Shown: positions 37,701 through 38,105, counted from the stretch's first letter. The stretch is 64,000 nucleotides of DNA from Macrostomum lignano (GCA_002269645.1 NIVC01000945.1:1-64000); one strand, 5' to 3'. A program made the numbers and translations. The notes: generated by a model from the letters alone, not told the origin.

Positions 37701-38075
37701 CTTTGACCACAACTTAGTTCTGTAGCTTCTATACAACGCACAAAAATACAACCCACCGAGTTGTTCGATTCTATGCACATTGGCTTCAAATCCGGGATAT
37801 TTTTCCCGGCACAAAGTCGCGGATTCGAATCCGGTACAGATAGCAATTCCCTCAGAAACGTCTGGCAAGGCATCTAGATTGTTCAGTCGCTCTAAAAAAC
37901 CGACAGAGAAGCTGAAATCTCCATCACCGAGAATGAGAAAGCTACGAGGCCGCTCCGACACGGGACTGATAGGCCAGTGGATTGCTAAACTGTCCACTGC
38001 AGCAGCAGCGGCGACTTCCGTATCGCACTGGAAGACATCCGATGGTTTACAAACACATGTAGACTGACCAGGCGG
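31800..38075 (-). CDS. FDXACB1: Ferredoxin-fold anticodon-binding domain protein 1 (N-terminal BMT5-like/DUF2431 methyltransferase-type domain, C-terminal FDX-ACB). Exons 38075-37757, 37185-37105, 36455-36154, 35863-35614, 34486-34031, 32335-31800; three 1-nt frameshifts
   Basis: Motifs in order: [71 protein letters not shown]...[13 protein letters not shown], then HDVSFW...VQLIDRY...SLCYRVTY. All introns are GT-AG with matching phases once the deletions near 36302, 36242 and 35680-35725 are allowed for. Confidence 0.88.
32400..32928. repeat. (TCTG)n microsatellite in FDXACB1 intron 5
   Basis: About 130 tetranucleotide units. Confidence 0.97.
33500..34020. repeat. 21-bp minisatellite CAGGATCCCCACATCCAGGCA-like in FDXACB1 intron 5
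   Basis: Regular at 33530-33680, degenerating on both sides. Confidence 0.9.
34500..35595 (-). repeat. 20-bp satellite (AAACCGAACACAGAATCATC) in FDXACB1 intron 4, inverted relative to the 14.4-kb array
   Basis: Plus-strand unit GATGATTCTGTGTTCGGTTT is the exact reverse complement of the unit at 38106-52575; about 55 copies. Confidence 0.97.
35915..36070. repeat. 20-bp repeat CTGACAGTCATTCTGACACC in FDXACB1 intron 3
   Basis: About 7 units. Confidence 0.88.
36590..36970. repeat. ~23-bp minisatellite TTCCTTAGATCTAGATTCTCCGC in FDXACB1 intron 2
   Basis: About 16 imperfect units with a palindromic AGATCT/TCTAGA core. Confidence 0.9.
37255..37725. repeat. 36-bp minisatellite ATGGCTCTTATTCTTGACCATAGACAACTTAATTCT in FDXACB1 intron 1
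   Basis: About 12 near-identical units. Explains the repetitive tail of ORF 37221..37997. Confidence 0.96.
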
Positions 38076-38105
38076 CTAGAAAATGCCAAATAGTTAAAAA
38101 CGGAA

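Follow-up and report, generated by a model that had tools for sequence, protein, structure and literature searches.

Spliced-leader trans-splicing may supply the start codon of an FDXACB1-like gene in Macrostomum lignano

Three genomic copies of an FDXACB1-like gene of the flatworm Macrostomum lignano all lack a start codon of their own. We consider it probable (roughly 0.6) that this gene lies downstream in a transcriptional unit led by NDUFB2, that the spliced leader is trans-spliced to a phase-0 acceptor at its first exon and that the AUG at the end of the leader starts the open reading frame (ORF). A polycistronic unit would begin with NDUFB2 and carry the FDXACB1-like gene downstream; the 35-nt leader (...TTGCATG) would be joined at exon 1, either at ttctAG/CCG (exon start 38075; a slash marks a splice junction) or at TTCCAG/TGC (38027) and, less probably, at ggtCAG/TCT (38063); and the terminal AUG of the leader would be the sole in-frame start of a protein of about 630–650 aa with a BMT5-like domain and an FDX-ACB-like C terminus. 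That the M. lignano leader ends in AUG and that a leader AUG initiates translation in flatworms are taken from the literature; the joining of the leader at this gene and the use of its AUG we infer from a comparison of genomic loci.

Gene structure and genomic copies

The window, by which we mean the whole 64,000-nt stretch of DNA analysed, is from contig NIVC01000945.1 of the M. lignano assembly Mlig_3_7 (GCA_002269645.1), which was assembled from PacBio reads with Canu and polished by Pilon with Illumina and RNA-seq reads. On its minus strand we rebuilt six exons of an FDXACB1-like gene, all with canonical splice sites (Table 1). According to Pfam, the BMT5-like domain (DUF2431, PF10354) begins at residue 47 of the ORF. 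Exons 1 and 2 of the window on their own match the profile with E = 2.8 × 10−12 and cover its positions 1–69, the GDGDFSFS motif included, and the reading from a third copy (L005, see below) matches with E = 1.3 × 10−29 (104 bits, profile positions 1–157 of 168). At the C terminus, matches to FDX-ACB (PF03147) score 24.4 and 21 bits, below the Pfam gathering score of 31.1; UniRef labels the protein of a second copy (P0030) 'FDX-ACB domain-containing protein'. On these BMT5-like and sub-threshold FDX-ACB matches, FDXACB1-like is a reasonable label for the predicted gene. Its arrangement, an N-terminal BMT5-like/DUF2431 methyltransferase domain and then a putative C-terminal FDX-ACB-like domain, resembles that of FDXACB1, and the UniRef names of the M. 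lignano proteins follow the same architecture. Human FDXACB1 has only a few residues ahead of the BMT5-like domain, whereas the M. lignano gene has 46 codons there (30 if the exon starts at 38027).

Table 1 Positions of the FDXACB1-like gene and other features of the window
Feature	Position	Strand	Remarks
NDUFB2	54483–54142	−	upstream gene, same strand; GenBank CDS 5′-partial, beginning 2 nt past the junction (exon start 54485)
NDUFB2–satellite spacer	54141–52575	−	3′ UTR with AATAAA at 53960; 23-mer minisatellite at 53458–53747; about 880 nt unique; no conserved donor
20-mer satellite	38130–52574	−	TRF; sense strand GATGATTCTGTGTTCGGTTT; 49% T; presumed outron or intercistronic region
TTAAC, branch-point-like (yUnAy)	38097–38093	−	18 nt upstream of the AG; kept in L002 and L005; putative role
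Exon 1	38075–37757	−	46-codon Met-free N-terminal extension and start of the BMT5-like domain
Third phase-0 AG, ggtCAG/TCT	38065–38063	−	exon start 38063; from the AG scan
Out-of-frame ATG	38038–38036	−	+1 frame, stop after 17 codons; out of frame in the window, L002 and L005
Alternative phase-0 acceptor, tcTTCCAG/TGC	38029–38028 (AG)	−	exon start 38027; fits [T/C]TNCAG; conserved in all three loci
Exon 2	37185–37105	−	splice sites ttttag/ and /gtaggt
Exon 3	36455–36154	−	remainder of the BMT5-like domain; one G short at 36303 and another at 36242 relative to L002 and L005
Exon 3b	35863–35614	−	one C short at 35690 (CCC to CC)
Inverted copy of the 20-mer	34502–35604		in the intron between exons 3b and 4
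Exon 4	34486–34031	−	agrees with P0030 and P0001
Exon 5	32335–31800	−	FDX-ACB-like C terminus and stop codon
Tetranucleotide microsatellites TCTA, CTGT and TGTC	28349–29029, 30512–30828, 32399–32927		80–130 copies; flank and interrupt the FDXACB1-like gene
Frizzled, single exon	6124–8091	−	655 aa; Fz and Frizzled domains; poly-Q tail
S6-kinase-like gene, long exon	61640–62224	+	annotated as a 553-aa kinase

Minisatellites of 20–36 bp are abundant across the window, and the TCTA, CTGT and TGTC arrays give rise to long spurious ORFs (poly-DRQT and poly-LSVC) in a mechanical ORF list. An Rfam scan of the window found no RNA family, and the M. lignano leader sequence itself was not found within it. 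A search of representative proteins returned mainly spurious repeat proteins, plus an older gene model, P0005; in both P0005 and P0001, a cleaner model of the same vintage, about 50 residues are identical to the exon 1–2 query. One candidate ortholog from a Logan contig (P0034) proved to be an unrelated BMT5-like protein.

Two further copies of the locus come from the same assembly. The second (L002, NIVC01000397.1), reached by homology search, holds BOX15_Mlig028110g2, the GenBank protein of which (P0030; 481 aa) is 99% identical; the third (L005, NIVC01002970.1) was reached through an exact match to the product of the adjacent NDUFB2. The layout is common to the window, L002 and L005: downstream of NDUFB2 come the 23-mer minisatellite, then unique sequence of about 880 nt, the 20-mer satellite, about 55 nt and exon 1. 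Aligned over 38075–37938, exon 1 has no indel among the three, and in all of them the ORF opens at cTAG/CCG and the ATG at 38038 is out of frame. The reading of L005 covers four exons (1–3b, in the 10 kb downstream of NDUFB2); this copy is about 3% diverged and has the four exons in one frame of 318 codons, with no Met before the NLMRRSERR of exon 3.

The spliced mRNA of the window changes frame three times, by −1 each, and the three 1-nt deletions that the original prediction had implied are indeed present relative to the paralogs, at 36303 and 36242 (GG to G in each case) and at 35690. All are contractions of G/C homopolymers, as expected of a PacBio consensus missed by polishing in a multi-copy region; they may instead reflect real decay, and the window copy may be non-functional. 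L002 carries a complex +2 change at about 7863–7865 (GATTTCAGC to GATTGAACAGC), which places a stop within GDGDFSFS (GDGD-stop); the frame-breaking differences are thus copy-specific and lie at different places in the window and in L002. Among the coding substitutions between these two copies, 10 of 13 are in the last exon (window 31800–32335, L002 13972–14507; 1.9%, compared with 0.2% in exons 1–4), a pattern suggestive of gene conversion or of copies with a mosaic past.

A reading frame without a start codon

Translation of 38075–37757 joined to 37185–37105 bears out the earlier claim that exons 1 and 2 form 133 codons without an in-frame Met. The first in-frame Met, in the NLMRRSERR of exon 3, is at about residue 166, deep within the BMT5-like domain. 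Because that domain runs from residue 47, a start codon is required upstream of 37937. The frame opens, as had also been proposed, exactly at a phase-0 acceptor: the in-frame TAG at 38078–38076 (minus strand) doubles as the 3′ splice site (ttctAG/CCG), and its AG (38077–38076) is preceded by a pyrimidine-rich stretch. The coincidence of an ORF edge with an AG acceptor is in itself only mildly unusual by chance, TAG being one of the three stops. Besides the ATG at 38038 (Table 1), all other ATGs in 38140–37985 are in the wrong frame and soon reach a stop. ATGs in the satellite and spacer can also be rejected as starts, as they are out of frame or are blocked by the in-frame TAA at 38096–38094 or the TAG at 38078–38076.

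An AG scan showed that the first three AGs past the satellite are all in phase 0 (exon starts 38075, 38063 and 38027), for which the chance probability is about 1/27; a leader joined at any one of them would therefore supply an AUG that reads into the entire ORF. The published [T/C]TNCAG motif is enriched at M. lignano trans-splice sites and is found at 44% of mapped sites (PMC8629364). The acceptor at 38075 (TTCTAG), conserved as ..cTAG/CCG in L002 and L005, lies outside this motif, whereas the acceptor at 38027 fits it, which leaves the junction, and with it the choice of N terminus (M-PPGQ... or M-CDTEV...), between the two. The original prediction had the leader AUG joined at 38075 to give M-PPGQSTC...; it holds in so far as the leader ends in ATG and 38075 is in frame, and it is weakened in its choice of site, which is off-motif when 38027 is not. 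The candidate joins on the mRNA are TTGCATG/CCGCCTGGTCAG (TTGCATG/CCGTCTGGTCAG in the L005 type), TTGCATG/TCTACATGTG and TTGCATG/TGCGATACGG or TTGCATG/TGCGATTCGA, in which the leader part is ...ATTTATTGCATG.

The spliced leader and the NDUFB2 transcriptional unit

M. lignano has one 35-nt leader, CGGTCTCTTACTGCGAAGACTCAATTTATTGCATG, ending in ...TTGCATG (PMC8629364), and the premise of an AUG-ended leader is therefore sound for this species. Of its genes, 30–39% are trans-spliced and about 15% are in operons. The gene upstream of the satellite on the same strand is NDUFB2, for which the true ATG is at 54447; the GenBank CDS is 5′-partial with 113 aa, compared with 101 aa from the ATG. In L002, this annotated CDS starts 2 nt past a perfect tttctttCAG/ acceptor. 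There, NDUFB2 is BOX15_Mlig028110g1 ('partial') and the adjoining FDXACB1-like gene is BOX15_Mlig028110g2. Under the naming rule used for M. lignano, genes with a common prefix come from one transcriptional unit that was assembled from RNA-seq and then split by TBONE at trans-splice and poly(A) signals; the Mlig028110 prefix on two unrelated proteins thus indicates that NDUFB2 and the FDXACB1-like gene are co-transcribed. The shared prefix is seen for L002, and the synteny of the two genes is identical in the window and in L005.

The pair resembles the described operons of M. lignano (PMC5730564, PMC8629364) in being on the same strand, in having a common unit prefix and in having a repeat-filled spacer; repeats are known to lengthen intergenic distances inside M. 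lignano operons (PMC8629364). It differs from those in PMC8629364 in the unusual length of the satellite in the window spacer (14.4 kb) and in that the NDUFB2 poly(A) signal and position 38075 are about 1.1 kb apart once repeats are subtracted, just over the operon threshold of 1 kb.

The bases at the NDUFB2 junction differ among the copies. L002 (4511–4517) retains a genuine acceptor, CTTTCAG/CG (GTATTTCTTTCAG/CG); the window (54486–54492, minus strand) has CTTCATG/CG, in which the last 4 nt are those of the leader; and L005 (about 9994–10000) has TTTTGCATG/CG (TTTGCATG/CG), which matches the last 7 nt of the leader. These leader bases are likely to be a scar of Pilon polishing, in which leader-bearing RNA-seq reads overwrote the genomic 3′ splice site, and they independently confirm that NDUFB2 is trans-spliced there. 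If this reading is true, the same overwriting may have removed the genomic AG of further trans-spliced genes with high expression in Mlig_3_7.

In the mRNA of NDUFB2, a housekeeping gene, the leader AUG does not share the frame of the CDS but opens a 15-codon upstream ORF (ATG CGC AAC ... TGC TAG) that overlaps the ATG at 54447, and its context is weak (U at −3, C at +4). Being out of frame, it must be bypassed there by leaky scanning, which implies that the leader AUG is a leaky start and probably an inefficient one for the FDXACB1-like ORF too.

Constraint on the Met-free half

Over exons 1–3b, the window and L005 differ by 8 synonymous and 7 non-synonymous changes at 228 and 726 sites, respectively, giving dN/dS = 0.27 (P = 0.013 against neutrality, binomial test). 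This comparison indicates that exons 1–3b are under purifying selection, and the ratio argues that the N-terminal half is translated in the Met-free frame. Constraint is clear from about codon 21 onwards, where the changes are mostly synonymous. Codons 1–20 have three substitutions, all non-synonymous, and codon usage is poor in codons 1–12; by these measures the first 16 or so codons may be unconstrained or non-coding.

These results bear on two other accounts of the missing start. In one, the gene family is decaying in a neopolyploid genome, the window and L002 copies are pseudogenes and loss of the start is part of the decay. The 1-nt deletions of the window (36303, 36242 and 35690) and the +2 complex indel of L002 that leads to GDGD-stop would be expected on this account, M. 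lignano has duplicated chromosomes with many redundant copies (PMC8629364), and the one CDS of the family that turned up in GenBank, P0030, is truncated at its N terminus. We nonetheless regard decay as unlikely, given that L005 is intact over exons 1–3b, that a dN/dS of 0.27 points to constraint since the copies diverged, and that the window deletions are of the G/C homopolymer type typical of unpolished PacBio consensus, with the sites of damage differing by copy. The Met-free frame, being common to all copies, is also older than any copy-specific damage.

In the other account, translation would start at the internal Met of exon 3 (MRRSERR...), with exons 1 and 2 as 5′ UTR and the methyltransferase domain deprived of its N-terminal half. 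The 481-aa GenBank protein of the L002 paralog (P0030) does begin at this residue; however, this is the fallback expected of TransDecoder where exon 1 contains a stop, as it does in L002. Exons 1 and 2 encode BMT5-like positions 1–69 in an open frame that is conserved between homeologs, and several out-of-frame AUGs would come before the internal Met. An internal start is therefore improbable, more so than decay.

Other sources of a start codon

A start codon could also come from a cis-spliced exon on the far side of the satellite, in which case the satellite would form a first intron of 14 kb. In favour of this, the acceptor at 38075 has the look of a standard 3′ splice site accompanied by a branch-point-like element. 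The original prediction had found no strong donor-bearing upstream exon in 52580–53460, and our wider scan of 52560–54141 extends that result: on the minus strand, this interval contains neither a GT[AG]AG donor nor an ATG-initiated mini-exon with a decent phase-0 donor. The 1.6-kb spacer between NDUFB2 and the satellite in L005 is likewise free of GT[AG]AG donors upstream of exon 1, and the single one in L002 is unconserved and has no preceding ORF. Donors within the satellite units are of the GTTTG type only, the spacer has no annotated CDS and immediately beyond it comes NDUFB2, a gene in its own right. A cis-spliced first exon is thus very improbable.

We give equally little credence to a non-AUG start in exon 1, for which the in-frame GUG at codon 27 (GCA GUG G, with G at −3 and +4) would be an example. 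L005 keeps both the codon and its purines at −3 and +4 (GCG GTG G), and the substitutions upstream of it look unconstrained or are in third positions. Against it, near-cognate starts are inefficient, and out-of-frame AUGs, including those at 38058 and 38038, lie upstream unless trans-splicing removes them.

The alternative offered in the original prediction, that the ATG at 38038 is the true start and that the assembly is one base short between 38038 and 37990 (a fourth 1-nt deletion), is essentially refuted by the frame structure shared by the three loci, the roughly 3% diverged L005 included. An older ML2-era model (P0005, UPI0007A14DDB) reads this ATG in frame, and the three further deletions demonstrable in the window might seem to make another plausible; but P0005 is from an L005-type copy (diagnostic CDSK and PDASEGIA) and the polished L005 of Mlig_3_7 is without the extra base. 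The window, L002, L005 and the ML2 model P0001 all agree on AGTGCGAT, not on the AGTTGCGAT that the indel reading needs. P0005 also treats satellite DNA as coding exon, frameshifts abound in its sibling ML2 models and, with the demonstrated deletions copy-specific, a single error shared across three loci is very unlikely. The two extra bases of P0005 are best read as insertion errors of an earlier PacBio-only assembly, to judge from the UniParc/UniProt accession series and the frameshifted siblings; P0001 begins with PPGQSTC, as the window does. A codon-usage score did not discriminate between frames over 38039–37989.

The satellite between the two genes

The satellite had been placed about 30 bp upstream of the opening of the frame, in agreement with its TRF edge at 38130 and with degenerate units that continue to about 38100. 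The same 20-mer occurs in inverted orientation within the gene (Table 1). AG dinucleotides number only 14 across the 14.4 kb of its sense strand in the window, and 11 of these occur in TTTCAG variants that fit the trans-splice motif. Its length varies over a 16-fold range, from 0.9 kb in L002 (6748–7647) to 4.3 kb in L005 (12304–16569) and 14.4 kb in the window. The polycistronic pre-mRNA might cross the satellite as a giant outron, with the length of the array and the TTTCAG decoys tuning the amount of leader-AUG-started FDXACB1-like mRNA from each copy; we think this doubtful, and offer it as a speculation on the composition and lengths of the arrays. If true, it would amount to repeat-length control of a downstream operon gene whose start codon needs trans-splicing.

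Public annotation

By exact look-ups, a 5′-partial CDS of the window copy beginning with CCG, TCT or TGC was not present in the GenBank-derived collection, and look-ups of P0001, P0002, P0005 and a prokaryote-style ORF call were also without match. No CDS is annotated in L005 within 10 kb downstream of NDUFB2. The Mlig_3_7 submitters dropped non-coding and repeat-overlapping transcripts from their annotation. Among the search matches there was no Logan or transcript-derived protein of the FDXACB1-like gene, and in three M. lignano papers the supplementary tables mention neither FDXACB1 nor Mlig028110.

Discussion

Initiation at a leader AUG was established for Schistosoma in 2006 (Cheng et al. 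2006, as cited in later papers), and the M. lignano leader is also known. By that account, 28% of trans-spliced Schistosoma transcripts have the leader AUG in frame, and over 40 cDNAs depend on it. The Schistosoma cases and the one here have in common an AUG-ended leader, a phase-0 acceptor and a conserved ORF without a genomic in-frame AUG; they differ in that M. lignano is another, free-living species, that the gene is a different one and that both the splice junction and initiation at the leader AUG are deduced here from genomic sequence. ORFs created by spliced-leader addition have been termed slORFs (slORFfinder, PMC9851317). Like these, the ORF of the FDXACB1-like gene would come into being only when the mRNA is trans-spliced, and standard annotation overlooks or shortens it; the M. 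lignano case is built on a genomic comparison among three paralogous loci.

The addition made here is a single well-documented candidate gene, together with the finding that public annotation shortens it. For the FDXACB1-like gene this amounts to an annotation fix of modest general significance, and trans-splicing of an AUG-ended leader would, if confirmed, explain why the annotation shows a 481-aa protein starting at an internal Met, or none. The case would exemplify a systematic blind spot: in organisms with an AUG-ended leader, ORF calling on leader-trimmed transcripts leads to models that are 5′-partial or internally started. Conserved M. lignano ORFs that lack a Met could be sought by a new scan of the gene set for phase-0 trans-splice sites ahead of them. 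If the leader AUG is confirmed as the start codon, the FDXACB1-like gene would be a conserved M. lignano gene whose full conserved protein requires trans-splicing for its translation.
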